From Basidiobolus meristosporus CBS 931.73 (Eukaryota; Fungi; Basidiobolomycota): a DNA stretch of 64,000 nucleotides. Under the pieces are notes generated by a model. It was not told the DNA's origin. It ran no database searches and worked only from the letters and a program-made list of their open reading frames with translations. Shown piece by piece: positions 1 to 17,000 of the stretch. How positions within the stretch are numbered: position 1 is the stretch's first letter; each line of letters starts with the position of its first letter. The DNA lies in NCBI GenBank assembly GCA_002104905.1, contig MCFE01000259.1:46919-110918 (forward strand), given 5' to 3'. Made by a program: the position numbers and the translations under genes.

Positions 1-371
1 TTTACTGAAATCTGACCGATCGATAGGCTTGCATATACCATGTGATGTTTTCTTAATTCGTCAAATTTGTGAGCCGAGTGACTCATCATTCAGCCCGCAA
101 AGTATGTATTTACATAAGGAGAGAAAGGAGAGAGCATAGAGCAACATTATACATGATTCATCAGCATTTTGGTTACCGCAATGATTGTAGAACAGCCTTC
201 TCCAATACCCCGGATTGAACCCCGTGACCATTGCTGACCAAAATAAGGGGTTATGCCTTTGCAATAAAACAGGCCAATGCATTTGATATATAGTGTCAAG
301 TGATGGTTTAACAACCAATCTAATACACCATCAAGTTGGTGGTTAGTGGTTACTACCTCCTTTCTCAAATA

Positions 372-2694
372 ATGCCAAAATCAAATACTCAGGGAGAGTT
401 AAATTCAAGAAGTGTAGCCTCAAAGTGGAATACTAGGTATTCTTCAAGCGGCCGTCAAAGTAGAAAGGAAGAATTCGTAAAACGAAGAAAGAACTCGGTA
501 TCTGTAACGGATATCCCCCAAAATAAGCTAGATAGACGACTTGGACACAGAAACAATTTCAACGAAAAGTCTCGCGGACAATTTGGTACGAGGCGCTTTA
601 ACAGCCTTTCCAAAGAGGAGAGATTTGATTCAAATGAGAAATCAAACCTTGCATCACAACAACACAAGACCATAGGAACAAACTGTCGTTCTCGAGCCTC
701 ATACAACGTAAGGCGTCACAGATTTAGAAGTAGTACCCCACCATACGGGCCTAGTGTAAATACAGAACGCTCTTCCCCCTCTACTACTGTCTCTTATGGA
801 GAATGCGAACACAACAGTAAAAAGCGCAAGCGTACGGAGACGCCAGTGAAGAAGCCTGTTGTTGGGCATGTCCTTCCGCCTTGGTTGAAGACTGAAAGCA
901 CCTTGAGCGGAGACAATTATGAAATGTACCTTCATTCGGCACTAATTACAACATACAGTTCCCTAACAGCTTAGCTTTATAGGCTTCATCAAGAAATCCA
1001 ACATTTCGTGGAGTACATATCACCTTCCCCAGAGGAGCATGAAATGAGATTCATGGTTTACAAAAGTATTGAGCAGGTAGTTCAATCTCTCTGGCCAGAA
1101 GCGAAAGTTCGTCTATTTGGGAGCTATGATACTCAACTTTACCTTCCTACGAGGTTAGTGCACCAGAAATCCCAATTACTAATCGTTCAAAATAATCATT
1201 CCATACTGCAGCGATATAGACGTAGTAATATTTTTGCCAGATTTGGTATCCAACAACAAGCGGTATCTTTATTTGCTAGCACAAACACTGGAAACATCTG
1301 GAGTGGCAACTAAAATCCGTGTTGTGGCTAAAGCTCGCGTAAGACTGCACTCAACAATATAAGGTGTCAAGAGTTCGGGACAATTAACTTTACTTGTAGG
1401 TCCCAATTATCAAACTCCAAGAAGCAGTTTCCAGATATCAAGTAGATATCAGCTTCAATGTTGAAAATGGGGTTCAAAGTGTTCCAATCATAAAAGAAAT
1501 GGTTCTAAAGAGCCCGGCCGTAAGGCCTTTGGTGCTTCTATTAAAACAATTTCTGCTGCTACGTGGTCTGAATGAAGTGTACAACGGCGGATTGGGTTCC
1601 TATTCCATTTTGCTGATAGTTGTGAATTTTCTTCAAGTGAGCTTCCATTTAGCACTAGTAGGCGGATAATCACTGATGAGGCCTTGTATATTCCAGCTAC
1701 ACCCCAAATTATCCACTGGACAGGTTGATCCTGAAAAAGACCTTGGGCGGCTACTTGTTGATCTGTTTTTTCTCTACGGGAAAAAGTTCAACTACATGCA
1801 AGACGGGATATGCGTTGAAGGCGAAGGCTCATATTTCAACAAAGTAAGAATCTCTGATGTCTAACCCCTCTCAACAAGTAGAATTATTCTGAACAGATAG
1901 ACAAATAGGCAGAGAAAGGTTGGTCCAACTCAAAGGATCCTGGGTTGCTTTCCATTCAAGACCCTCAAGATCCGAATAACGATGTCTCTAAAGGATCCTT
2001 CGAAATCATGCGTGTCAAGCAAGCTTTCTCGAGCGCCTATGACTCGCTTACTTCGCTCTTATCTAGCCAAACTGTATCGGAGCGTAGTCAGGATAATAAC
2101 GAGAGAGGGAATGTACCTCGAAAACAAGCCTCCTCGATCCTCGATATAGTGATTGCCATCTCCCCTGGAGCAATCCAAAACCGATTCCATGTGGCGACGG
2201 AATATCAAAGACACACCCTTCAAAATAATCTCAAACTTCAATCTACTAAAGAACTACAAGTTGAGTTGGCCGAAGTGTTGCGAAAAGCGGGAATCAGCTC
2301 AACATCAATATCAGATAAACTTGGGCCGCTTCCGCCTCAATTCGACTCAATTACTCTAGGACTTCTGGACCAAAACGGCAGTCAATATGACGTTCATGAG
2401 CACGACTTTTATAACTTCTATGGACCTCCTCACCTATCAGTCCCACCATTTTATCAAGCCAATGTGTATCCTCAATCTATCCGGAATATGAACGTTCACG
2501 CCACAGGGATACCAAATGTTGGGATGAACATGGGCAGAGGATTCGGTATGGGCATGGGTATGCCAGAGTACCATCCGCATAGTGCATATTCCAACCATTT
2601 CCCACCGTTTGGTCATGGTGCTCCTTTTGGTAGAGCAGGCGGTTTAGGCGGTACGCCGCCGCCCCCCTGGGGATCTCATTTCCAATGGTGGTAG
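372..2694 (+). CDS. TRF4: Non-canonical poly(A) RNA polymerase, Trf4/Trf5/Cid14/TENT4 family (TRAMP catalytic subunit-like); 6 exons: 372-925, 983-1153, 1212-1338, 1400-1636, 1697-1843, 1909-2694
   Basis: Splicing out five GT-AG introns (57-65 nt) gives one continuous frame with the Pol-beta NTase signature LFGSYDTQLYLPT|SDIDVVI, AKAR|VPIIK, YQVDISFN, LRGLNEVYNGGLGSYS and the PAP-associated motif LSIQDPQDPNNDVSKGSF. The symbol is family-level (TRF4/TRF5/cid14). The last acceptor (1908) is the least certain. Confidence 0.93.
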
Positions 2695-3565
2695 AATAAG
2701 TATAAACAATAGATTATTGATGCACTCTTAAAGAACAAGATGACACATTCTATGTGTTATTCACCTTTAGTGCTTACTTTTCTGGTGATAATATTTCCAC
2801 TTGTATGCTCAATATCTACCATGAATAAAAAACTCTTATGACTAAGATCCGATTAATAAGTGTTCGATGACTGCTTGAACCGAAGGAGCAAATACCTGCT
2901 TTCGAGAGCTCCCAAGCTATAAGAGTGGCGAGCTGATTAGTCTAACGCTCCATATATACTCGATTGGATTTTAAGCCGAGCACAACACGAATTAGGGTAT
3001 TATTCAAGGTATTCATAACAAATTGCCTCAGACGCATTCTATCAAACGCTGCCAAGAACTAATTTACTTTTATATGCATGCATTTATAGGCGTGATGATA
3101 TGATCACCACATGTGTAAGATCTTTATTGATGATAAATTCTGAAATGCCGTGTCCGTTGTTATTTGAGACTGGACTCTATCTACAGAAACCATAGGCATT
3201 CGGAGGGATTCGAGTTTTCATGTACAGACTGCTCTCTTGTGAAAATGCTGTGCAATCACCAGAAACAAATGCCGGGAACGCTTTTCTGAATCTGTTATAA
3301 TACGAAACGATGGATGCACTAGACTCCTGGTATTGGCATGACGATTTTAATGCTGACTATTGGCTGCGGCTACTTGAACCTGGAGTCGTAGTATTATTCG
3401 ACTTGTGTAAGTGACATCATTACCTAGAATATCGTCTCAATATGGATAGTCCACCGTACTGTTGATTGGTTGCGGCTTTTGGGTGGTCACTTTATAAGAT
3501 ACTGGACTTGGCAGCAGGATACTTATTTTCTGTATCCTTCTTTAACTCTCCACAAGCCAACCAAC

Positions 3566-4078
3566 ATGACACATTTCAGCGATAGAGATGTTTTCTTAAT
3601 GATAATTGGGTTTTTCCTCCCACCCTTCTCCGTGCTGATTAAACGTGGGTGCGGCGCGGACTTTCTCATTAACATTGGTCTCTCGATGTTGGGACATGTT
3701 CCTGGTAGGTAAACAGTATCGATACATGTAAAGTCTAGATAATTAACCCTATCATTTCAAGGTATTTTGCATTGTTGGTACCTTGTGTACAAATACAACG
3801 ATTATGCCCAATCTGATCTTGAGCGAGGCCAGCAACCCTATCAACCTCTCCCACAACAACCTGCGCAAAATCCTCCTCCACCAGCAAATCATCCCGATTC
3901 GAAGAAAGCACTTGCTCAGAACGATAAGCCCAAAGCCCTTCAAGGCAATAGCAACAATGAGGGAGGGCAGAGTTCATACGGCGCCGTAACGCAAAATGGC
4001 CAAGAAAGGCCACCAAGTTATAGTGCAGTCACAGCAGGTAACGGAAATTGCATTAATTCTGACGAAATCTTTTACTAA
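3566..4078 (+). CDS. Pmp3/Sna (UPF0057) family membrane proteolipid with an extended Q/P/N-rich tail and a PPSY motif; exons 3566-3704, 3762-4078
   Basis: The spliced product MTHFSDRDVFLMIIGFFLPPFSVLIKRGCGADFLINIGLSMLGHVP|GILHCWYLV matches the Pmp3 two-helix pattern; intron 3705-3761. A further short intron (4038-4080) that would extend the C-terminus is possible but unconfirmed. Confidence 0.88.
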
Positions 4079-6520
4079 AGCGTATTCCCAAGGCCTAGCT
4101 TCCGCGCCCTCTGGTCCAATAGATGGCTCTAAAACCGGTGCTGTCAATCAAGCCAATTGATGATAAGCAACAGCTGTTATTTTTACAAGTCCTTACTCTT
4201 TGCTCTGTATACATAAACTAAGAAGATCCTGACTACTTCGTTCTGGTCACACCGTACGGTCTGATCTGGCATTTCCAGAGATGTTTAATAGTATGTGATT
4301 ACATTGACATGGACCAGCTCACGCTTTTGATTGTTGATTTTCATGTTCCTAATGGTCATTAAGCCCCATCCCTACAGTAATATCTGTAGAGTAACGCATC
4401 AAGCTGACTGTCACAACTGTTTGTGGCATTGTAAAGGCTTCTCGATACATCAGATCCACACTCGACAGTAATTTAATGAAGTGCGTATTAATGTTTGGGA
4501 ATTTTCATCTGACAGCTGGAATTAAATTCAGCCAGAGTTTAACCGAGATGGCATTGGGTATTCCAGATAACTGTATACTGGTATAGATGAGATTTGCCAC
4601 GTAAGGGATTGAACTGAGGTCATGAACAGCTGAAAGAAACGTCTGGTGAGCTCACCATCTGGTGTACTGACATCTGGAGATATGCTCCGGCAAGCTGAAG
4701 CACTGATTATGTGGCGCCAGAACAAGCACCAGGTCACAAACTAAGCTGCGTCGTGATGCACACTACTTACACAAAGCAAAAGGATGGGATGGGATGATCT
4801 CGCCAAGAAAATGGAACTTTGGATTTACCCTTTCAATGGGAGGTCATTCTGGTCATGCCTGGGCTAACAGCTGAGAGTTACATAAAGTTTCATTGCAGAT
4901 TCCTCATCTCATATACAGGATGACTAATACCGTACACGATCAGATCATACACGGATCACACTGGGATTTTGTGCTTGGCATGTAGCGAATGAACGGGCGA
5001 CCTTCCTTAGCCACATTTAAATCCTGCCTGGTTAATGTTGATGATCACCAGTAAATGAATAATGTTGATAGTGAGATGATATCAACTTGCTACAGAACTA
5101 GTTGTCTGATTAAGGGAACACGGTAAAGGCTCCCTTGATACCGATGAGAGAAACGAGCAGCGGGATTTAGATGAGGTTTGGGGAACAGCATCTTGCACAA
5201 GCCACTCGACGCTCTGCCCAATGGATACTCAGAAGTGGGTGTAGTGCAGGATGTTGTATTTGGTTTATACTTAATGGATCGATAAGCCATGGCCTGGATA
5301 CCGAAAGGTAGTAACGGCCCTGGAAATAGCACTCTATGCAAGAATGCCCAGTCTCGGGGCATGGTGATTTTTTTGATTCGTAGACTTCATCCCCAGTCCT
5401 GGCCTAATGCCTCACAGGTCGACTTTTCCCGTGTACTGCGCAAGTACGTACCGACGCTGGCTTGAGCTGAGCTGGCACGAAACCCCATAGTGTCGTCAAG
5501 AACCCCTAATTACCAAGCTTCGGGCTCATCATACTCTGACTTCATATGACAGAGTCATGCCGCCACCATAATCAGAATCAGCCATCAACCTCGACTAAAA
5601 TGCTGGGGGTCCTGTGAGGAAGAACAGCACCAAACCCTTTCGACCCTGTTTTGAGTGACGATGATTGAGTGTCACTGACCTAGATTGTCTTGGCCATTCG
5701 TACTAAAGATCCCAGTCTAATCGGGGTTCTATGATGAACAATGATCAATCAACTGTACAACCAACAGAGACAGAATTAAGATACTCATCGGCTACCCGCC
5801 AAGATCCCTGGCTTCGAATTGACGAAGATTCGCACGTAACCAATTACTCAGCATTACCCAACGCAGGTGTACGTTACAGTAAAAATAAGGCACCCTAGAT
5901 CATACCTTACCATTCAATTTACACCAAATGCTCCCCAAGACCCCGATACAGGTTGCGAGAAATTTCAGATGGTTACGAAATGAGCATCATCTCTGGCGCC
6001 ACAGTATCATATCGATGCGCTCAAGACGTCGCTCTCCTCTTCCCACCTTCGACTCCACGGCGGTATCGGAAAAATCCAATCAGGTCTAGAGGCCCAATGA
6101 TTGGCATTGTTCGAGAGCCGACCGTTAAACTGCAATAGCTTAGTATCACGCCATTCCAGAGCTTTAGCAAAGCAAACCAGCACCTGCTGTGTGGAAAGCA
6201 CTACGGGACCATTCTATTTTTAGCCAAAACCCGGCTGGGGTATGTGATTGATGGGAAATAGACAGCTATACGATAAAGGATAAGATTTATTGTTACACGA
6301 GATGTGAGAAAAGGGTGATTACATATGGAATTATGCCATTAGAACTGTACAAATGTGAATAGCGGTTGCGTAATAAATAGGAAGTTACATGGAATACTGG
6401 AGGCTCACATTGTTTTTACACAGACGGTCAAAAATACACCTTCCCCGGTCGACGGCGTTAGAGTCAATGCGGTGGGAAGTATGGTTCAGGTGCGGCGGGG
6501 CGTTAGTTACGGTTATATAT

Positions 6521-6811
6521 TTACAGCTTTGTATAGGGGTCGAAGTCCTGCTCGCTAAGGCGGCGGCTGGAGAGGCGATCGATCGAGGCGCTGATTCGCG
6601 CGATATCCATCTGAAGTTCAAAATCAATGGAGGATTCAATGCACTGATTCTCGAGGACGTGCAATGAACTGTGCTGCACATATTGCTCGAACTCGGCAAC
6701 TGCCTCCTCGCAATCATGGGAGGCGTGGGGGCCGTGGCAAAATGGGCATTCGACTTGGTTTCCCTTGAGGGAGAGTCGCTTGTAAAGACGATGAACTGAT
6801 AAGCGAAGCAT
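6521..6811 (-). CDS. Uncharacterised 96-aa CX2CX3HX4C zinc-knuckle protein, paralog A (intronless)
   Basis: ATG in CCAAAATG context with TATAAAAG ~65 nt upstream; CPFCHGPHASHDC; gap-free 69-aa alignment with the ORFs at 8685-8975 and 11229-11580. Confidence 0.85.
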   Translation of the reverse strand: MLRLSVHRLYKRLSLKGNQVECPFCHGPHASHDCEEAVAEFEQYVQHSSLHVLENQCIESSIDFELQMDIARISASIDRLSSRRLSEQDFDPYTKL

Positions 6812-6873
6812 TTTGGCGGTGTCGATAAGCAGGGATCGATTGTCGAATGGCTTTAGTTAGGTGGCCTGCCCCT

Positions 6874-6881
6874 CTTTTATA
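6874..6881 (-). promoter_or_regulatory. TATA box of paralog A
   Basis: TATAAAAG on the minus strand followed by AGGGGCAGGCCACCT, a motif shared with the paralog B promoter. Confidence 0.65.
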
Positions 6882-8684
6882 CCAAGCGATTCCAAGATTC
6901 AACCTGGATGAGCCTGCCATGGCCACAGCCAGTAGCCGCCAGGTTCTAGTGATGCTCAGATCAGCAAAAATGATCTGTACCACCTGAGCAAATCGAGACA
7001 ATGCCGGTAATAATGAACATCTGAAACTGTACGAGATCTTGGGTACGAGCAATCTCAATAGATGTCACGATCCATTCGGCAAGCCAGAATTTCGCTGATT
7101 TGCAAGCCCATTTCCAAGCCTAGATTTAGTGGTGAACGAACGAACCAAACAGACAGTTTCCGATCTTCAGGCTCGGTGGCTGGTGAGAGGCTAATCTTAT
7201 TAGTCTTCACGGATCCAAGAACCAACGATGCTCTTGTGGGTGGTGTGAAGCTACCAGGCGCCTCCGAGTGAGCTGTCTCATGGACAATAAGCCACTGCAT
7301 CTATGTTTTCATAACATTGAGAAGGAATTCTGAAACAAGGTGTCTATGTTGTGTTCAGCTCGCTGTCGTCGTCCGGGCGGGTAGGAGGCTTCGGTGATTT
7401 GCGCAAGCTGAGCCTGATGTTACCTTTGTGGTTTAATTATTCTATTACCAGAAATTGGTTCTGTGAAGGTTGCATGTAGCCCTAGCAAGGTTTCAATACT
7501 TTGCCTAGCTGCGGGGTGCAGGGTAATACACATTCGTGAGATTGACCAACAGAGTTAGGTAAGCCGCGGTACACATATCCCAAGTGCTGTGGTGCTTCAC
7601 GGAGGATGGTACCCAATGGTTGGCGAGGATAGTGGATCCTACAGACTAGCAAGCCCGCCGTGATTAGCCACGGATACCGTCCACAAAGATATTGATCCTG
7701 GAGTGTGTGATTATATGGATCCAACTCCCATATATGATCCACACATCACTGCGCTTCATCGCTTTGTAATGGAAAATACGGGTTAAGCATATGTTTTGAT
7801 GCTTACGGCGATACGTGATGGAAATGGAAACTCTACCAGAAGGCTAGGAGTTGGCCAGCTGTGAGAATGCCAGTGCAGTGCACAAAAGCTACCGGTATCC
7901 ATCCAATGTTGTGGAATCGGAATTATTCATCAAGCCCAGATTCGCTGCCAAAAATTGCTTGACGGCGGAGCAATGGTCTAGAGCCTTTTCTGAGGTACGA
8001 ATCTGATGCTACCGTTTCTCTATAGTCTTACAGGTTTTGGAGATGGACTCCCTCTCCACAAAGGCCATCACATCGTAGGGCAATTGAGGCTTTCGCCGAG
8101 GCAGTTGATTCGTCCATTGTCGGGATTGTCCTAAGTGTTCTAATTTTCTATTTCGAGAGATTTATCCTACAAGTGTGGATGGAACAGTTGATAGGCTGAG
8201 TGGACATTACACGAATGATGAGTGATTATCACTCGGGCGCTAATTATTCGTTGTAATGGGAGACGGCGAAATCCATTTTAATCTAACGAAACCTGCTAGT
8301 ATTTCTGCTTCATTGGGTAGGCAGTGATTCTGGTTTTGGAGTGTGTGCCAAGGATGAATCCATGAGACTCGCTGATGACACTGCTACAATGTTGCGCCTC
8401 TCCATGATCATATCTCTTTTTCCGCTTGATATATAATATTTCAAGCCTCAACTGACGTGCTGACAACCTGGAGGATTTCTGTTCAACCGAATGCTAGTTT
8501 ATTACCCGACCGTGGGTTCGTTCGAAATACCCATCGAACTTAATGCTCGCCTGCACTGCACAAAAACAACCGACGTAAAGGGCATGAAGTACCGAGTTCA
8601 TAATGGCGAGTGTTCGCAGCCGACCCTCGCTGGAGTTTAGGGGAAGTGGCATAGTGCAACAAGCGTGTTACAACCTGGCGAGCC

Positions 8685-8975
8685 TCACTTGTACGGGATA
8701 AAGTCTTGTCCACATAGGCGCCAACTTGCCAGCCGGCTGATGTAGGTGTGAATACGTGCTAGATCTAATTTGAACTCAAGGCTAGGCGTGGACTCTGCAC
8801 ACTGGTCCGTTAGCACGTGGTACGAACAATGAGATACATACTGCTCCAACTCAGCGATGGCTTCCGCACACTCTTCAGCAGCATGCTTTCCTTGGCAGAA
8901 GTTGCATCTATTTTGCACGCCGGCTTTAGGCGAGGCCAATTTGAGGTTGCGACGGGTGAAATGAGGAAAGGCCAT
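8685..8975 (-). CDS. Uncharacterised 96-aa CX2CX3HX4C zinc-knuckle protein, paralog B (intronless)
   Basis: CCATCATGG start; CNFCQGKHAAEEC...EQYVSHCSYHVL...RLCGQDF aligns without gaps to paralogs A and C. Confidence 0.85.
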   Translation of the reverse strand: MAFPHFTRRNLKLASPKAGVQNRCNFCQGKHAAEECAEAIAELEQYVSHCSYHVLTDQCAESTPSLEFKLDLARIHTYISRLASWRLCGQDFIPYK

Positions 8976-9130
8976 GATGGACAGTTGGTTCGAAGAGAAC
9001 TTCGCCTTGACTAGGAATACAGGTGCTGGGTGAGCGATGGCTAGGGTGTTCCCACTGCTGAAAATCGAGCAACTGAATGCGGCCCACCAATGATGGAGAT
9101 ATTAACGAGAGCAAGTGGCCAGCCCCCTCG

Positions 9131-9138
9131 TTTTTATA
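9131..9138 (-). promoter_or_regulatory. TATA box of paralog B
   Basis: TATAAAAA on the minus strand followed by CGAGGGGGCTGGCCACTT, resembling the paralog A promoter. Confidence 0.6.
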
Positions 9139-11172
9139 ATGGGATATCGATATGATGTATTGCCTGGAAGCATGCCCAAGTTGGGGCTTCGTAAACTAGT
9201 TTAGTAATGTAGGAAATGATTAAGGAAGTCTTGAATCATAGAGCTTGGATTCGCATTTCGTCAGGAGATGCTACTTGGGTTTGTCTAACCACAGTGATGA
9301 TATGGATCAACTATCATAATATCTGCGAAGTGATGACTGCATATCCCTTGGTGTGATGCTGAATCAGCAGGATATGATTCTACTGACTTGGCTGGGATCC
9401 TTGCAACAAGGGAGCAAGGTCTGGCAATGCGGATTACATCATACGTATGGGCGGTGGACTGATTAAGGGTAAGTTCTATAAGTGAACATAGCCCCAGTGT
9501 TAGCTTGCATCTTTGATTGCCTCATCTTGATCGATCTTCTACATGGCTGAGTAGCCAAAGCCCTGCGATTCACTTCCAAGCTGCTAGGCGGTGAGGAATC
9601 TAACAGTAGGATACAGATAGCATTATGGAGGTTTGACAAATTAAAAGCGAATGCATAGCCATTCTTTTCCTGTTGAGATCGCTGGATTGGTATGCTCCTG
9701 CCATACCATCTCAGTTTGACTGTTCTCGCTCAGATCTCAGGTCATGCCATGATGAACTTGGTGGCATATCTTCCATCGCCTAGAAGCACAGCATGCCACA
9801 GTCCGGAGGGGACGGGTCTTGCATTAGCATAAGCTCAAATGAAATGGTTTCTATCCGCCCAATGCTGGTCCGTCATACTGGACAGACCATGCTTCTTGTG
9901 AGGCCAGGGTTCTAACTATGAAGTCTCTGTGCCCAGCATTCTGCAGATGAGCCTTATCCAGGTAAGTCTTGCGCCGTAGGAGCTATGTGGTGGCGGAACA
10001 TATATGCAGCAGTGAAGGAAAGACCCTTGCCTAGCGAAACATTAATACGTGCTGGGATAATGGATGCAGCCTTCCCACTGCTTGTAGGAGTTTCCTGCCA
10101 ACACCATGCCACATACATGTTGACTTGGAGGTAAGCATTCATGTGAGTTTCTCATGTTATGTGATATTCCGATCCACACGTAATAACGCCATTTACGTAA
10201 GTGTATAGACATATATTGACCAACTAGACTTAAATGGCTATTTGGCTGAGGATATCCGAAATCGATGGTGTGAGAATGGGCTGGTAGCAATCAAGACTAC
10301 AGTGATTGCGTCAATAGGTAAACCGGAAAACTGATGACAGGAGCCCGTGCATGGAGGTGATTCCCAAAGGCTAATCCAAACGGGCTCGCTTGCTTCTGTT
10401 TTGGAAGCGTGGGTTAGGCGTTGCCTCGTTGGTAGGGGATGATGGGGCCATGGCGAGTAGGTGCGATAAAACAGCTTGCTAATCAGACGGCGATCAGTGT
10501 TCGGCAATGTTTCTGTATCTCAGCTTCGCCTCTTGGGCACACGGCAGGGCTGATTACTGGAGAGTCGCAGGATTTTCTTCAGGTGCTTGAAACCTTACTT
10601 GAAGACGTCTGTGACGCCCCTTTGATTCACCAATGCGAATAGTGAATAAGGCCTAGGCAGGTTTCGTATCGGCTTTCATTAATTGTTCGGTTCGAGGTGT
10701 ATCTGATGCTTAGATTAAATCAGAAACCGATGTAGTAGAGTATTCTATCGGGATGTTCTGGTTTGATCGCTGATTCTCTGTATGTTGGCGATGCCGGAAT
10801 CCTCCGTCCGACCGAGTAATATGAGGACGGCAGGCGTGCGGATGTCTTATGAAACTCCGGCTTGGGTAGACGAATACGTAGGTATGAAAAATGGAATAGA
10901 TTACTGTTCGAGATAGGTTTGAGTTGTCAGTGCATTCATGATCCCATTAATGTATAAGATTTGTTCGAATTCATCAAATGCCTGTCACTTCTCATGCCTC
11001 TACCTCATTGACATGGTTTGGATGATATGGATGAAGGTTCGATATGCGCGATATCTCATATGCGTCTCGGACTGGGCTGGACTCCACTATAAACCAAACA
11101 TCCTGTTATTTCCGTATGGTGGGCCCGTGTTTCAGGGATATTGCAACGAGCTGAGGTTCCCCATGGATGGGT

Positions 11173-11180
11173 TATAAAAG
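11173..11180 (+). promoter_or_regulatory. TATA box of paralog C
   Basis: TATAAAAG ~50 nt upstream of the ATG at 11229. Confidence 0.6.
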
Positions 11181-11228
11181 CATGTTGGCTTGCCTCTACC
11201 TCTCCTATCAACCAAATCTTGCCTTATC

Positions 11229-11580
11229 ATGATATCCAGTTCTGTCCGTAGGCTTTCGAAAAAATTCAGTTTTAAAGTAAATGACCCTATCCCCGCTGAG
11301 GTGTGCGGCTTCTGCCAAGGGGATCATGAATCTTCGGAATGCGTCGAAGCTTTGTCTGAGCTCGAGCGCTATGTTATACATAATTCCGCGCATGTTCTGT
11401 CTGACCAACGGGTGGACTACTCGGAAAGCTGGGAGTTAAGCATGGATTTGACCAAGATCTGTTCCTCTCTATACCGCCTTTCATGCCGTCGTCTGGTAAA
11501 CCAGGTAAGCATCCAGATTTTCTTTGCCAACAAGGCCCATACTGACCACCCCCTCCCAGGACTTCACCTTCAAGCCTTAG
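11229..11580 (+). CDS. Uncharacterised 98-aa CX2CX3HX4C zinc-knuckle protein, paralog C; exons 11229-11504, 11560-11580
   Basis: CGFCQGDHESSEC. Removing a 55-nt phase-0 intron (GTAAGC...ACTGAC...CCCAG, 11505-11559) restores RRLVNQ|DFTFKP*, matching the QDF C-terminal motif of A and B. Confidence 0.85.
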
Positions 11581-12973
11581 CTTGGGCTACTCAGCCATCA
11601 TTGTAATGCAGTAAATCCATGTAAATACTTGATCGCCTGAATCGAGCAAAGCTGTAAATTCGACTGAGTAGTCTAATATCATGTAGTAGCAGATTTAGTG
11701 CAATCGATGCAGACTGGGCGCCTACTATATAAAATGCTCTTCCAGGACCAGTTTTACAAGACCGAGTGTACATTACCTAAATATGCCCTCGAGGCGTTGG
11801 GGATTCGGTGGCCTCTTCGCTCATCTATTGATGGAAGAGTACTCAGAATCCCTATGAAAGAGTATCGATGCGTAACCCACGTCGGTCATTCCGCCTTTCG
11901 CGGAATGATCTATATCTGTCTCAAGTAGTTTGAAAGCCACATCCAGTAAGGTGGAATTATATTGACTTCGGCACTATAATTAGTTGGGCCTTGTCTAAGG
12001 TTGGTTTCACAAGAGAGGAAGGACTTGTCACTGGTGGGATCACAAGCATGGAAATCCCACCCTGGCGACGGGAAAACCAACATCCATGAATACCAGCACC
12101 TCGTCAACATCCGTGTCCGTGGGGTTCGTGAACCTGTCATCTGTTCAACGAAGTACACTTTGTGATCCTTGGCTCGGCACGCTTGCAGATGTGAGGGCGA
12201 AGCGGAGCGAACAACTCCACCCTTTCAAGTGACCAGTTACTGGGTGTCTGATTATCATGCAGACCTGCAGCCCATTCAAAGGCTCTACATCGCCTGACAA
12301 AACTCACCCTGTAAACATGATTAGGGGATCGATATGAGGCCGAGCACGACTTCCCTCTGATGCATCTGCGTGCTTTATAATCAGAGGCCATCCGACAGTG
12401 GTTGTGACGTGTGTAGGGTTCGGCATAGGCCAGGTCAATGGACACAAATTAGTAACTTCATCGATATGGCGGAAGCGGCCAACCGACCTCATAAACAATT
12501 TTCCGAAAGTACGACCGCTATATGGGCAATCCTTTAGGCTTCTTTGTTAAACCTATATTTATCCCATCGGGTGGCCATCATGCTATTATTAATCGGACGG
12601 GTGATGCCATGAAATGGCAAATCATTCACCCAGTAAGAGGTGTGCTTCCTAAATGTTGGCCCATCTTATATATGTTAACCTTGTGGGAAGTGGATCCAAT
12701 CAGCGGCGGGTAGTCCAAAGGCTCCCAGATGCAACCCGAGTTTGCTTAATTACAACTTTATATACTGGAACATACATTTAACAGAGGTAAGTTTGTCTAC
12801 AATTGCATCTAGTGTCTCCCAGGGGGGATTATTATGTAAAGGAGGGGAACCTAATGCCTGCTATTCGTGCAAGATATCGAATCAAAGCCATGTTGCTTCG
12901 CGTGCTTCACCAATAAGTGTAGCGAATGATAGAAAGATATCCCAAGCCAATATGCCCATGCCCACCCGAAAAC

Positions 12974-14065
12974 CTAGGCAGAAATAGGGGCTCGTGTGTA
13001 GGATGGTGGCGGCAAATTCATATAGGATGGGATGGACTGGTAGCTAGGGGGCGATATGTCCAATGATAGCTGTTCACTCGATCTCACCAGAACTGGCAAG
13101 TCCTTTTGCAGAATCACCTTCTCCCCTTGCCGTTTGTCGTTGATATGGAAAAGGATGGAAAGCTCATGCTTGACTTGGATGTACTTGGTATTTAGCGTCG
13201 GATAGACATCGGGCGGCAGTGTTAGGTCTGGAAGTAGCCGTCTTGTGTTATCGGCGCCTACAGCCCTATCGCCAAACTCGTCGAATCTAGCGCTTTTCAA
13301 TGAATACTCCTGCGTGCGGAAATCCCAGCTTCCTTCTGGCCCAGAGTAGTTGGTTGTTTCTATCAGATAGAACCGAACTTTAAGAATGTCGAGATCGCTT
13401 GTCAGCGACGTGAGATCTAGCGTGATGGGGATGTTCTGGTTGATCACCAGGGTCGGCTCGCTTACAGAGATGTGATACCGAAAACGATCCTCCCAGGTTC
13501 CAAGTGCTTCGCTAGAGTACATCAAGGCATCATCGTAGTTTAGGGAGGAGTTCCGTTGGATCACAATAGAGCGTCTAGCCTTCAAATCAAAATGAAGCCC
13601 TGGCCGCTCCACCACGGCAATCATTCGGTACTCTATGCTACCATATGGCAGGTCGGTGGACTCAGGCGTGCTGCCGTCCAGGGCCAGTTCAAAAGGATAC
13701 CTATATCTGTTTGAACTCAACGTACAGCCCCCCTGATCCGGTTGTAGAAAGGTCAACTTCCGCTGCACGATGGTATGCTCTCTACAAGTAATATCTAAGA
13801 TGATAAGGTAAGTAACTTCCCGACAGAGCGATCATGAAGGGGAGGACTTACTGTCGTTCTCGTTTAGTCTAACCTTGCCGATGAATTTGGCCCAAATAGA
13901 CTTGATTTTTAACGGGTTATGTACAGTGAGTATGATGCTTCCTCGAAGCACACAGCCGACGGACTCCTGCGGGGTTCCCTGAAGGGTGAGTAGGTCGTTC
14001 TCGATCTCGAATTCTACGGTGGCGTTTTTATTTAAGAAAGGGAAGGGCTTTTGATGTCTGAACAT
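12974..14065 (-). CDS. Alpha-arrestin (arrestin_N/arrestin_C, ART/Rod1-like Rsp5 adaptor), 344 aa; exons 14065-13852, 13794-12974
   Basis: Motifs SVGCVLRGSIILTV, YRYPFELAL, PESTDLPYGSIEYRMIAVVERPG, IQVKHELSI and two C-terminal PY motifs (SPPSY, LPPPSY); a 57-nt GTAAGT...TTAG intron keeps the frame. Confidence 0.9.
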
Positions 14066-17000
14066 ATTACGGCTATCCGAAGTGAACAAACACGATAGAA
14101 GGTATATATTATTACAAGTGGCTGGGAAAGGAATCGGTCTATGCTAAATATTCTCAGGTTAATGCCAGATCCGGCTGGTATTTATACTCGAGTGAAATGA
14201 TGTGTTTATTTTCCTCGTGCCATTGCGCATCCGAATTATGAAATGTGGTTATCGCTGAGGCATCCAAATGTGGTGAAAACACTGTCAGTGGATAGCCTCA
14301 GGAAATCGAAGATCAGTCAATCCAACTAATATAATCCCATGAATTCGAGTGGGTCGTGCATTATCACGGGCTGGGTATTCATGCCTTATATGGTATAGAA
14401 AGATACCATGGATATAGATCCGTGCTGCAGATTGGACTATTTCATGGAAGTGAACAGCAATGATGTATTTATGATGGGCAGATGTGCATACATTACTCTG
14501 ACCAGATCCCCTTTTCAGTTACGTTTATCCACATCCCACACCTTCATCAGGCAACTCACTGAAGAGCGCTCGGAACTTCAATTGGTTACCACCAATGGAG
14601 AACACACCTTGTCGGTAGGATAGCCAGGCTACACCGACCAAATCCAGCCACACGGCATGCGCCATGCATCTTGGATCTATGCACTCAACACAGCAGGCGT
14701 CTGGAGCCACGGGAAGTGCCTCATCACCTTGCAAATCCATTCGATTTATCTCGGGTAGGTAGCCATAAAGATTAACCCAGAAATTTGATGAGTAGATTTT
14801 GGGCCATTACCAAGTCGGCTTTTCGTCCGGCTGCACTAAATTCCACTGGAGTTTCAGTTGCCTCAATTGTAGGTGTAAGGGGTTTCGATAACCCAGACTT
14901 TACTCCATTAGGATCAATGGTTAGAGTTATCATCCATAGGTGGCTAGATAGGGAGTCTACACTTGCAGACCAGTAATAGTGGGTTAGAGTCGAACAAATC
15001 CATATTTCTTATCGGTTGTTTCCACCGCAAACCGCTAGCTCTACATCATTTATGTTGCTATTGTTTCAGAAATCAGAGTTACTCAGGTGATTGCCATATT
15101 TGCACCCGGGGTGGGAGATAAATGTCCCTCAGATACGTGGGCTCAGTTGGGGCCGAATTTAGATGTACATTGACGTTGTTGCGCTGCACCACTGGATTAT
15201 TCCACCATCTTGCTACAAGCATCAGCAAGGTTCGTAGGGATCCAGGGTGGAATGGGTACCCTCAGACTGTTAATGCAGACGCCCAAATAGGTTTACACCC
15301 CCAACAAGGATTGCCATGACTTACATATACGGGCGTATTGTCTGAGAATGGCTCCTGCAAGCGCCAGGATCCCAATGCCAAAAGTAGCACGCCACTACGG
15401 TGGAATTGTTTGGGCATTCGCGTTCCCTTATCAAAGTGTTACAGATAAATAAATGTACGTACTCACACTTGCCCTCTTCCAATAGGTATTGGCTCTGGAG
15501 AGATTCGGAGGAAGTTCCCACTCTGTTATCCGCAAGTATCTTTGGCAAATCGTATTGGGGCGATGAATTTCAACCATCGAAATTACCAAAGAGTGAGGTA
15601 AGGCCTGTGGAGACTGGGATTTCTAGCTGATTATCTGTAATGGTTGCGGTTCAATCATTCGTGCTATTTACATGTGGCTAGCCCAGGAAGTCCTACTTCC
15701 CCGTCGATCGATACCAGGGTAGTTGTGTTGTACTACGGAGATACGTGATGGTTGGCTTTTGCACCAATAACGCTTCGACTTCTGATTGCTTTGACTATCT
15801 ACTGCTGTAGAGGAATCAATTGATCATCTCGGTGAACGGCAACCAATAAGCCCATATGGCCAATGAGGAGTGCGGACATAGAGTTCAAAATGTGCAATTT
15901 ATCAATTGCGCGCCAGTCGGGGGATGTGATAATAGAGGAGTGGTGAATAGCCTGGCATTGAAGCGGATATCGGGTTCCAAAATATCAGGTAGTGGCACCA
16001 TACTTATCAACAGATGGTGCTCTGAGCCCGATTACAATGCGGGAGCTTGGATACCCTTCTCACAATCGCGGTATATTGAACGCCCACCATTCGATCCTAG
16101 GCTCATTGGTGTTTCACGGAGATCGGAGATCACGGGATTCTGATCAAACCATGGAGCGTCCCAAACTCAAGTCCACCAAATTTATCCAAAGCTGCAATGC
16201 TGGATCGGGGTATCTTGGTAATCAATCACAAGAGCGCCATCCATTGCCTGGAATAGTGTGAGATCTTGATGGTGAGCCAGGAATGTGTTCAATGGTAGCG
16301 GTTTTGGAGATGGAAGTAAACTCCGAGTATAGATTTGCGCCACAAACGTCTAGAGGCCCGGCTGACTAAGAGTTTTTTTTCACAACAGTGCTGCTTGGCT
16401 TCGACATGGCATAGGGATGCATTGTATATCAACGGAGAGTGAGCGCACCGCAGATGAATCAACACCATCTTGGCTAAGCAGTAGCCTAGCAAAGCATGTG
16501 CTATATTCTTTTCACGCAATTGCTCATGTCCTGGTGCAGATTAGCTTTTGCGATGGTACCAAACAGCAGACACATACCGGGATTGTTAGTGAGTTAATAG
16601 CTGCCGGTGGAGATCCTCATTGTGGCTCTGGGCTTTTGACTTCTTTGCCTCGAGATCGACTAATTAGGGCCCATGATGAAATGACGGACCCTTACTGGGT
16701 ATCTACTGGGGATGGATGCCCTGGGATTCGAAGCGGGCTTGATGGAATGGGTGTATGCGCAGTGGACATAACCACCTGGCCCTGATTGGTCTAGGTTATT
16801 TTCTACGGGACTGGATTCTCCAAGAATCTGCATTTCATCTAGAGATCAGCCATATCTGAGCGGGGTAGTTGAATTTGTTTCTATCGACCCCTTGCACCGA
16901 TACATCAAATCCTTCTATAGCCACCAACAGGTGACCCACGAATGCTTCCCAAAAGCGGGAAAATAGTCCGCTGACTAGCGAATTTCTACTGCTGTACAGG

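Follow-up and report, generated by a model that had tools for sequence, protein, structure and literature searches.

Knuckle-bearing microproteins of Basidiobolus, apparent derivatives of a long fungal family with GoLoco-like motifs and possible partners of G-alpha

What are three small paralogous genes of 96, 96 and 98 codons in the fungus Basidiobolus meristosporus CBS 931.73, where do they come from and what might their products do? The genes, here called g1, g2 and g3, emerged from the ORF list and from splice reading of a 64-kb window (the whole stretch of DNA that was analysed, 64,000 nucleotides of contig MCFE01000259.1). An earlier note, made from the letters alone, had taken them for an unrecognised, lineage-specific family of zinc-binding microproteins.

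The gene g1 (6521-6811, minus strand) is intronless, encodes 96 amino acids and is absent from the public annotation. The second gene, g2 (8685-8975, minus strand), also intronless and of 96 amino acids, corresponds to P0002 and is the sole one of the three in the public assembly annotation. The third, g3, lies on the plus strand, is likewise missing from the public annotation and is spliced: exon 1 (11229-11504, 92 codons) covers the leader, the knuckle, motif 1 and motif 2 through its invariant Gln, a 55-nt GT..AG intron (11505-11559) follows in phase 0 immediately 3' of this Gln codon and holds a fungal-type branch site, and exon 2 (11560-11580) adds six codons and the stop, giving a product of 98 amino acids. 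The exon-2 residues are identical to the C-terminus of Basidiobolus ranarum P0015, which is annotated with the same splice. Genes of 96-98 amino acids had been proposed at these positions and were recovered there, g1 and g2 as ORFs and g3 as a spliced gene. The TATA box attributed to each was also found on the coding strand, 70 nt 5' of the ATG in g1 (6875-6881, minus strand), 163 nt in g2 (9132-9138, minus strand) and 56 nt in g3 (11173-11179, plus strand); of four B. ranarum relatives, three likewise have a TATA-type box (at -56, -81 and -54), for a background density of about 0.5 per kb per strand.

An ungapped block of 69 residues, bounded by the first Cys and by the Asp-Phe that follows the last Gln, is common to the three products, and the 28 invariant positions reported for it were retrieved as 26 columns of alignment A1 plus two residues of g3 exon 2. 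Their similarity is not a matter of chance, because pairwise tblastn E-values range from 1e-10 to 4e-25 and no stretch in the rest of the 64-kb window falls below E 0.4 against the three proteins. The genes lie in the genic part of the window, free of transposable elements (TEs) as described before and of normal CpG content (observed/expected 0.74-0.80 at 1-15 kb); the ratio is 0.06-0.25 in the TE-rich part at 19.7-64 kb.

Comparison with B. ranarum documents selection on these genes. The product of g1 shares 70% identity with P0001 (pN 0.163, pS 0.853) and that of g3 shares 74% with P0015 (dN/dS ~0.10); over the orthologue pairs pN is 0.15-0.16 and pS 0.68-0.85, with saturated silent sites. 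This dN/dS check, with replacement differences of ~0.16 per site relative to B. ranarum, supports the notion of old paralogues under purifying selection. Reading frames are intact in both species, the alignment between them is confined to coding DNA and the blastn match of the g3 region to L002 ends where exon 1 ends. The B. ranarum region L001 carries the three genes in identical order and orientation, and alpha-arrestin genes adjoin the microprotein genes there, in the other B. ranarum region and in B. meristosporus. An exhaustive HMMER census with the microprotein profile gave 14 matches, among which the knuckle-bearing ones are found only in B. ranarum and B. meristosporus, in agreement with lineage specificity. 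The genes g1-g3 belong, as paralogues of expressed type maintained by selection, to a microprotein family specific to Basidiobolus.

Each microprotein begins with a leader of about 20 residues, basic and rich in Ser, and continues with a CX2CX3HX4C knuckle and two tandem motifs of about 24 residues, both made of an amphipathic helix and a short extended segment with the pattern hydrophobic-x-x-Gln. On the minus strand, the g1 knuckle (C22-x2-C25-x3-H29-x4-C34) occupies 6710-6748, motif 1 (residues 36-59, the helix end and the extended segment closing at the invariant Q56) 6635-6706 and motif 2 (residues 68-91, with the invariant R84 and Q88) 6539-6610. The family and motif alignments place the same elements of g2 at 8868-8906 (C24-C36), 8793-8864 (residues 38-61) and 8697-8768 (residues 70-93) of the minus strand, and those of g3, all within exon 1 on the plus strand, at 11304-11342, 11346-11417 and, for the part of motif 2 that ends with the invariant Gln, 11442-11504. 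The family-wide invariants are C22, C25, H29, C34, Q56, R84 and Q88; the four ligands, and with them the fixed knuckle noted before, are kept in all 10 aligned members, as are Q56 and Q88.

In the AF2 model (pLDDT 74.5, and 86-89 over residues 21-40, the knuckle region of g1), the knuckle is followed by a helix (31-49), a loop, a second helix (62-86) and a tail, with a non-helical segment after each of the two helices. The last knuckle Cys falls within the first turn of the long helix and the knuckle caps helix 1; its probable role is to bind zinc and to stabilise the beginning of this helix. A second metal site had been envisaged in an HxSxH helix. This idea does not survive the wider alignment, in which H47 (Leu, Ser, Thr or Gln in other members) and S49 are not kept and H51 is the only near-invariant residue. 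The HxSxH positions align instead with Arg/Lys positions of motif 2 and of GoLoco-like motifs, and by alignment the HxSxH helix belongs to motif 1, the first member of an internal duplication of ~24 residues: motifs 1 and 2 can be aligned without gaps and, on that comparison, are duplicates of one another.

The family is unrecognised inasmuch as Pfam, PDB and Foldseek searches and tblastn of the window revealed no named Pfam family, no solved structure and no gag or TE relationship. It is, on the other hand, not unrelated to everything, for its helical two-thirds are homologous to a repeat unit of a long, uncharacterised family widespread in early-diverging fungi. The members of the latter, all labelled 'hypothetical', measure 400-700 amino acids, combine a conserved N-terminal half with about seven motifs and a near-invariant PPxY-type motif, and are encountered in chytrids, Mortierellomycotina, Mucorales, Glomeromycotina and Calcarisporiella (for example Radiomyces P0014, Calcarisporiella P0008, Mucor P0023, Rhizophagus P0039 and Geranomyces P0063). 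Comparison of the microprotein with the long family by hhalign (96.8%, E 2.7e-10, 57 columns) pairs g1 residues 37-93 with P0014 residues 383-439, comparison of the respective motif profiles is in register (93.4%, E 2.6e-7) and exhaustive HMMER with the microprotein profile recovers P0008, P0010, P0011, P0012 and P0014 at E 1e-7 to 7e-4. At the level of sequence, these results establish the homology of the double motif with the pair formed by motifs 3 and 4 of the long family.

Gene structure points the same way. A phase-0 intron follows the homologous Gln (that of motif 4 in the long family) in g3, P0015 and P0004 and in L004, L005, L008 and L010, four long-family genes from four orders; g1, g2 and P0001 have no intron after the motif Gln. 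Since this intron is common to both families at the same codon boundary, the microprotein gene stems from a piece of a long-family gene and later acquired its knuckle. In g3 both the intron and the Arg behind the motif 1 Gln survive from the ancestor; g1 and g2 have lost the two. The repeat unit, the intron position and phase and an aromatic residue after Gln-Asp are common to the two families, whereas the long proteins lack the Cys/His knuckle and a microprotein-type leader, and the microproteins comprise an excerpt of two motifs preceded by a new leader and a new knuckle, and are devoid of the N-terminal half and of PPxY. By these comparisons the microproteins are derivatives of the long family, not full members of it.

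The likeness of the long-family repeat to a known motif bears on function. PF02188, the Pfam GoLoco family, matches 19 of the 30 long-family members at E<=0.1 (best 1.8e-5), every score seen falling below the gathering cut-off of 25.1 bits; no other Pfam family is matched by more than two of the 30, and precomputed PF02188 matches exist on two long-family members. Long-family motif profiles built from three and from seven proteins, with motif instances chosen by the pattern hydrophobic-x-x-Gln-[Arg/Asp/Glu] and hence biased in their last five positions, were compared with 177,635 PDB sequences and matched only GPSM2/LGN GoLoco chains (E 3e-4 to 1e-3), with nothing besides GoLoco peptides below E 1. 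Other proteins with solved GoLoco chains, for example RGS14 (PDB 1KJY, 2OM2 and 3QI2; PMC2954821, PMC3285607), are not among the PDB matches of these profiles. By profile, the motifs of the long family, and of that family only, are closest to animal GoLoco/GPR motifs, and we lean towards regarding them as GoLoco-type.

For the microproteins the GoLoco link is transitive, because neither the products of g1-g3 nor five relatives from B. ranarum/B. meristosporus are matched by PF02188 even at E<=10 and the profile of the microprotein motifs by themselves retrieves no GoLoco chain from the PDB. A pooled profile of long-family and microprotein motifs still matches the LGN GoLoco (E 2.7e-3). The second step of the link consists of sub-threshold Pfam scores and of a 20-residue match at E ~3e-4 to one protein, LGN. 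According to the AF2 model and the alignment, the GoLoco-type layout, an amphipathic helix and then an extended segment with an invariant Gln at its end, is present in the microproteins. They resemble the GPSM2/LGN GoLoco (PF02188; PDB 4G5Q, 4G5O and 4JHR) in the ~20-residue amphipathic helix followed by hydrophobic-x-x-Gln and in the Arg that g3 motif 1 retains after this Gln, and differ from it in being missed by PF02188 and by the solved peptides, in having mostly Cys or Asp at the arginine finger and in their fungal host. The arginine finger is the Arg directly after the GoLoco Gln and contacts GDP (PMC12329598). It is found only in motif 1 of g3, P0015 and P0009; its position is taken by Cys in motif 1 of g1 and g2 and by Asp in every motif 2 of the window (Asp or Glu in every motif 2 of the family), which makes five of the six motifs of the window in which it is replaced. 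Convergence is possible, because published surveys (PMC3971589, PMC2954821) report GoLoco from animals and choanoflagellates alone. With these qualifications, the GoLoco-like homology makes concrete the 'small adaptor' suggested in the earlier note, with G-alpha as a candidate partner.

The likeness to GoLoco could also be convergent and the double motif an interaction module for a partner other than G-alpha, a candidate being some component of the alpha-arrestin/Rsp5-type ubiquitin-ligase trafficking system. PPxY is a WW-domain ligand, and both the near-invariant PPxY-type motif of the long family and the alpha-arrestin neighbours in the two species speak for such a partner, although this adjacency may be one inherited arrangement copied in a single regional duplication. 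The lack of a direct PF02188 or PDB GoLoco match for the microproteins, the mostly absent arginine finger and the placement of GoLoco outside fungi by surveys (PMC3971589) also favour it. We nevertheless consider it rather unlikely, as GoLoco peptides alone are matched below E 1 by the long-family profiles across the PDB and Pfam GoLoco is the sole recurrently matched family.

It is less probable still that the molecule is a zinc microprotein centred on its knuckle, serving in nucleic-acid binding or as a general adaptor, in which the helices would be no more than scaffold and His/Glu might form a second metal site. It is true that no residues are more strictly conserved than the four ligands, that AF2 is confident in this part and that the single Foldseek match, far from significant (E 7.4), is the CCHC knuckle of Lin28. 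As in the CCHC knuckles of retroviral nucleocapsid and Lin28 (Pfam zf-CCHC), the ligands follow the order Cys-Cys-His-Cys within 13 residues, but their spacing is 2-3-4 versus 2-4-4, the Pfam scan at E<=10 yielded no zf-CCHC for the window proteins and no zf-C2H2 for these or for five relatives from B. ranarum/B. meristosporus, and the knuckle profile matched no solved knuckle in the PDB. Furthermore, H47 and S49 are not conserved, Q56, R84 and Q88 of the helical part show the same invariance as the knuckle, the history of that part is older, independent and knuckle-less and the whole microprotein is acidic to neutral; nothing points to the nucleic-acid binding evoked before. The UniRef label of P0001, C2H2 zinc finger, is a source name only and was rejected on the same scan, P0001 itself lying outside it.

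The stretch ahead of the knuckle contains 4-7 Lys/Arg and 0-2 Asp/Glu in each member and is rich in Ser/Thr, and AF2 places a helix at residues 2-12, in keeping with a basic N-terminal mitochondrial presequence of ~20 residues on a small organellar zinc protein. This reading is very unlikely: P0007 and the second unit of P0005 carry the same basic segment at an internal position, a leader of this kind is missing from the homologous long family and the segment equally fits basophilic-kinase sites (Arg-Arg-x-Ser) or a membrane-binding helix. An origin as domesticated fragments of a retrotransposon Gag, evoked by the CCHC-type ligand order and by the copia- and gypsy-type elements abundant in the window from 19.7 kb onward, is barely credible given the X3 spacing in place of the X4 of CX2CX4HX4C, no Pfam zf-CCHC or gag match at E<=10, a best tblastn match to the TE ORFs of the window at E 0.49, no LTR or pol context, cellular neighbours in conserved synteny, a genic CpG content and a nearest TE sequence that starts only at ~19.7 kb. 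Chance ORFs or decaying, functionless pseudogenes, to which the unannotated state of g1 and g3 might point, are close to refuted by frames intact in two species, pN far below pS, conservation limited to coding DNA, a conserved splice and the TATA boxes.

We are highly confident that g1-g3 are real genes descended from the long fungal family; their ancestry is well supported, their function inferred. That the microproteins are small G-alpha-binding modulators with a derived knuckle and weak or no GDI activity is, as a whole, a plausible explanation, if not quite a probable one; G-alpha binding as such, which is suggested by analogy, is possible though doubtful. The microproteins would bind GDP-bound G-alpha like Pcp2 and GPSM3, small proteins of animals with little beyond their GoLoco motifs. 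Pcp2/L7 and similar small animal GoLoco-only proteins have been described (PMC3939015), and a large G-alpha repertoire is reported for Mucorales (PMC6936849). The microproteins share with Pcp2/L7 and GPSM3 the size class and short, largely extended or helical, tandem motifs (one to three GoLoco in the animal proteins), but no direct sequence relationship to either is detectable; unlike the microproteins, known here from sequence, the animal proteins have no zinc knuckle and a demonstrated GDI activity. In the proposed complex, modelled on the GoLoco mechanism (PMC12329598), the helix would lodge in the switch II/alpha3 groove of G-alpha, and the segment with the Gln would pass across the nucleotide pocket. 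Because the arginine finger is mostly replaced, the microproteins of Basidiobolus would sequester or compete for G-alpha rather than strongly inhibit GDP release.

The three paralogous microprotein genes of the window comprise g1 (6521-6811, minus strand) and g2 (8685-8975, minus strand), both intronless and encoding 96 residues each, and g3 on the plus strand, which begins with an ATG at 11229, ends with a TAG stop at 11578-11580 and consists of 92 codons, an intron and six further codons. This intron (11505-11559, plus strand) is 55 nt long, interrupts the frame in phase 0, is bounded by GT..AG and carries a fungal-type branch site. The three open reading frames proposed in the earlier note were all recovered, g3 with this single intron. 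Their products align without gaps from the first Cys onward, and the 28 invariant residues previously counted are reached by the 26 invariant columns of alignment A1 plus two residues of g3 exon 2. The genes match one another by tblastn at pairwise E values of 1e-10 to 4e-25, and the rest of the window never falls below E 0.4. TATA-type boxes, also claimed for each gene, precede the ATG codons by 70 (g1), 163 (g2) and 56 nt (g3), and three of four relatives from Basidiobolus ranarum have them at comparable distances; the background density of these heptamers is about 0.5 per kb per strand. The promoters of g1 and g2 (6855-6881 and 9108-9138, both minus strand) have in common a G-rich stretch that lies immediately 3' to the TATA box and terminates in GGCCAC; g3 has none. 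The window matches contig MCFE01000259.1, and the g2 product has the exact sequence of an annotated protein of B. meristosporus CBS 931.73; the public annotation of this species calls g2 as a gene and omits g1 and g3. An exact-sequence look-up of the g1 product returned no record in the protein collections searched, and a word-index protein search with g1 found one relative.

Comparison with B. ranarum informs on the selection acting on these genes. One contig of this species (L001) carries three family genes in the same order and orientation as in the window, adjoining two arrestin genes. On another (L002), P0015, the nearest relative of g3 (74% identity), adjoins the closest relative of the window arrestin (80% identity); the annotated splice of P0015 is that of the g3 model and the final six residues are identical. 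In the searches, g3 was represented by its exon 1, and P0015 took the place of the spliced product. The purifying selection suggested in the earlier note was borne out by Nei-Gojobori estimates, with pN 0.163 and pS 0.853 between g1 and its relative P0001, and pN 0.153 and pS 0.676 (dN/dS about 0.10) between g3 exon 1 and P0015. Between the two species, blastn aligns only g3 exon 1, stopping where the exon does, together with the coding part of the arrestin gene, one repeat and one 38-nt upstream block. From the conserved array, the shared splice, pN values far below pS and the near-restriction of alignment to coding sequence, we conclude that g1, g2 and g3 are protein-coding genes under purifying selection. 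The 38-nt block (window 10905-10942; L002 4159-4193), located some 290 nt before the g3 ATG, shows 84% identity to the corresponding B. ranarum site within non-coding DNA that otherwise cannot be aligned, and counts as a candidate regulatory element.

Judged by arrestin and g3, orthology falls to L002 in B. ranarum, and L001 is an older paralogous region. At odds with this assignment, g1 finds its best relative on L001 (70% identity), and the 4.4 kb upstream of P0015 on L002 contain no gene resembling g1 or g2. The conflict could result either from differential gene loss after a regional duplication or from an assembly that splits linked DNA. The middle gene of the L001 array (8459-8728, plus strand) is unannotated and its second motif is degenerate, carrying an insertion and an altered tail and having lost the Arg and Gln-Asp-Phe positions; this gene may be decaying.

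Mapping of the public annotation onto the window places a nucleotidyltransferase/PAP-type gene (924-2184), a 65-aa gene (2488-2788) and a Pmp3-family gene (3566-4160) ahead of g1, g2 and g3. An alpha-arrestin gene with Arrestin_N and Arrestin_C domains (12974-14065, minus strand) follows directly downstream of g3, and one or two arrestin genes adjoin microprotein-family genes in L001 and L002 too. From about 19.7 kb to its end, the window is occupied by copia- and gypsy-type LTR retrotransposon copies, as classified by Pfam: a copia-type copy split into four ORFs by three interruptions (about 20.07-24.17 kb), a gypsy-type copy (about 35.04-39.68 kb), a copia-type fragment (42.56-43.33 kb), a copia-type copy with a single uninterrupted 1305-aa gag-pol ORF (47.74-51.66 kb), a reverse transcriptase fragment (about 57.76-58.26 kb) and a copia-type copy split into three ORFs by two interruptions (59.57-63.40 kb). 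The location of the microprotein genes in a CpG-rich, transposon-free half was correctly described: the CpG observed/expected ratio is 0.74-0.80 in the genic part (1-15000) versus 0.06-0.25 in the transposon part (19701-64000), where TpG is raised. Low CpG and raised TpG restricted to repeats are typical of methylation-driven CpG decay. The uninterrupted copia copy shows the highest ratio of the transposon part (0.25), which suggests that it is the youngest.

An exhaustive HMMER search with the family profile over 1.84 billion representative proteins found 14 proteins. Those bearing the CX2CX3HX4C putative zinc knuckle come from B. ranarum or B. meristosporus only, in agreement with the lineage-specific family previously postulated; they measure 94-100 aa, except for a 177-aa tandem form and a 168-aa form. 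The former (P0005, K493DRAFT_347119), encoded elsewhere in the B. meristosporus genome, contains two knuckles and two motif pairs in tandem and shows that the unit formed by a knuckle and a motif pair can be repeated. Across ten family members, C22, C25, H29, C34, Q56, R84 and Q88 are invariant (g1 numbering), and the microproteins are probably zinc-binding. In the HxSxH stretch, H51 is near-invariant and H47 and S49 vary; the second metal site that had been proposed there was rejected on these grounds. Weak cytochrome matches raised the possibility of a heme-binding CxxCH, which was rejected because a His follows the second Cys in only some paralogues. Pfam scans of the three proteins gave noise only (DUF2024 and DPC2, E>0.1), so that at this level they belong to no named family, as the earlier note had it. 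AlphaFold2 modelling of g1 on the family alignment (mean pLDDT 74.5, pTM 0.34) predicts a weak helix at residues 2-12, a confident knuckle running into a helix at 31-49, a loop at 50-61, a helix at 62-86 and a loose tail. A pTM this low, together with the pairing of helix and tail in each of two units, fits linear binding motifs better than a compact fold; a Foldseek search of the PDB with this model returned no match below E 7.

The proteins without a knuckle among the 14 are long and match only profile positions 52-95 or so, several times each. A search seeded with one of them uncovered proteins of 400-700 aa in Mucorales, Glomeromycotina, Calcarisporiella, Modicella and the chytrid Geranomyces. 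This long family (loci L004-L010; proteins P0008, P0014, P0012, P0063, P0039, P0010 and P0023; alignment A4) spans chytrids, Mortierellomycotina, Mucorales, Glomeromycotina and Calcarisporiella, and every member is labelled hypothetical. Its N-terminal half is conserved, its members have a near-invariant PPxY-type motif, and about seven motifs of some 24 residues occupy the C-terminal 230 residues or so. No animal protein was among the matches listed in a profile search with the long-family alignment. Comparison by hhalign of the microprotein alignment with 30 long proteins gave 96.8% probability and E 2.7e-10, placing g1 residues 37-93 on residues 383-439 of the Radiomyces protein P0014, which correspond to its motifs 3 and 4. 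The two microprotein motifs (motif 1, g1 residues 36-59; motif 2, residues 68-91) align with each other without gaps and both are in register with the long-family motifs. Of the family reading in the earlier note, lineage specificity and probable zinc binding therefore stand; the second metal site and the lack of relationship to known proteins do not, the helical part being homologous to the long family.

Gene structure provides a second line of evidence. A phase-0 intron lies directly after the motif-2 Gln codon in g3 and in the B. ranarum genes for P0015 and P0004, and a phase-0 GT..AG intron lies directly after the motif-4 Gln codon in four long-family genes, from Calcarisporiella, Radiomyces, Rhizophagus and Mucor. 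This motif-4 Gln is the residue that hhalign equates with Q88 of g1. Profile homology together with an intron shared after the homologous Gln strongly supports descent of the microprotein gene from an excerpt of a long-family gene. Directly after the Gln of motif 1, g3, P0015 and P0009 share an Arg with the long family; g1 (residue 57), g2 (residue 59), P0001, P0004, P0006 and the unannotated gene of B. ranarum have a conserved Cys there. Both the intron and this Arg, present in g3 and missing from g1 and g2, were kept by the former and lost by the latter two.

In the long family, the repeated motif itself points to GoLoco. The Pfam GoLoco model, whose gathering cut-off is 25.1 bits, matched 19 of the 30 long-family members at E<=0.1 (best 1.8e-5) in stretches coinciding with the motif instances; no other Pfam family was matched by more than two of the 30, and precomputed PF02188 matches exist for two members. 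Motif-only profiles were searched against all 177,635 distinct PDB sequences. A profile of 19 long-family instances retrieved three GPSM2/LGN GoLoco chains (E 3.2e-4 to 8e-4, the next match being at E 1.4), and one of 38 instances from seven long proteins retrieved these three chains again, as its sole matches at E<=10. Relevant PDB matches came from motif-length profiles only: sequence searches with a three-protein profile, with whole P0008 or P0012, or with the whole long-family alignment gave nothing relevant. We therefore consider with moderate confidence that the long-family motifs are of GoLoco type. In the microproteins, the Pfam GoLoco model found no match even at E<=10 and a microprotein-only motif profile retrieved no GoLoco chain from the PDB; pooling microprotein and long-family motifs weakened the LGN match and kept it (E 2.7e-3). 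In solved GoLoco complexes, the Arg following the motif Gln, or arginine finger, touches the GDP beta-phosphate (PMC12329598), whereas in the window microproteins this Arg is missing from five of the six motifs and occurs in motif 1 of g3 only. GoLoco has been described as restricted to animals and choanoflagellates (PMC3971589) and is said to have arisen in metazoans (PMC2954821); literature searches pairing GoLoco with early-diverging fungal genera found no paper linking the two. Most likely, as judged from these comparisons, the microproteins derive from a GoLoco-like repeat family of early-diverging fungi, of which they are a new form with two motifs and a knuckle cap.

By analogy, a function related to G-alpha is plausible. 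The microproteins would bind GDP-bound G-alpha as do small animal GoLoco proteins such as Pcp2 (PMC3939015). The motif helix would occupy the switch II/alpha3 groove of G-alpha, with the Gln segment placed over the nucleotide. Since the arginine finger is mostly replaced, a competitor or sequestering role would be expected rather than strong inhibition of dissociation. The knuckle would hold zinc and secure the beginning of helix 1, and the leader preceding the knuckle, Ser-rich with 4-7 Lys/Arg and 0-2 acidic residues, could serve as a membrane-binding or kinase-regulated segment.

The foremost rival explanation retains the module and gives it a partner other than G-alpha, perhaps tied to the neighbouring arrestins; the recurrent adjacency may reflect functional linkage or merely inherited synteny. 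Another centres on the knuckle, acting in nucleic-acid binding or as an adaptor: its Cys and His residues are invariant, and a knuckle-only profile matched no solved knuckle in the PDB. Mitochondrial targeting comes next and has to be set beside the basic leader. Domestication of a Gag protein is close to excluded, a transposon origin having been rejected on the Pfam scan, which gave no gag match, and on tblastn against the rest of the window. Non-function is likewise close to excluded, given pN values far below pS.

If the G-alpha reading is preferred, one may tentatively envisage, as a scenario we hold to be possible rather than probable, that GoLoco-type regulators existed in the fungal-animal ancestor, persisted in chytrids, Mucoromycota and relatives in the form of a protein with seven motifs, and were trimmed to knuckle-capped two-motif microproteins that multiplied in Basidiobolus. 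To our knowledge, the control of early-diverging fungal G-alpha genes is little understood. Fungi outside Dikarya possess unusually many of these genes, twelve in Mucor circinelloides (PMC6936849). If the scenario were true, they would have a class of G-alpha regulators missed by surveys based on Pfam cut-offs, and the origin of the GoLoco mechanism would move back to the opisthokont ancestor, or else a striking convergence would have taken place. The Basidiobolus microproteins would then represent a new architecture, with a linear motif for G-alpha binding anchored by a metal knuckle. Whatever becomes of the G-alpha link, two of the three microprotein genes are missing from public annotation and, even if this link fails, two uncharacterised and selectively maintained fungal families are now defined. 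Thanks to the shared intron, the microproteins offer a clear and traceable case of a family that arose from part of a larger gene.
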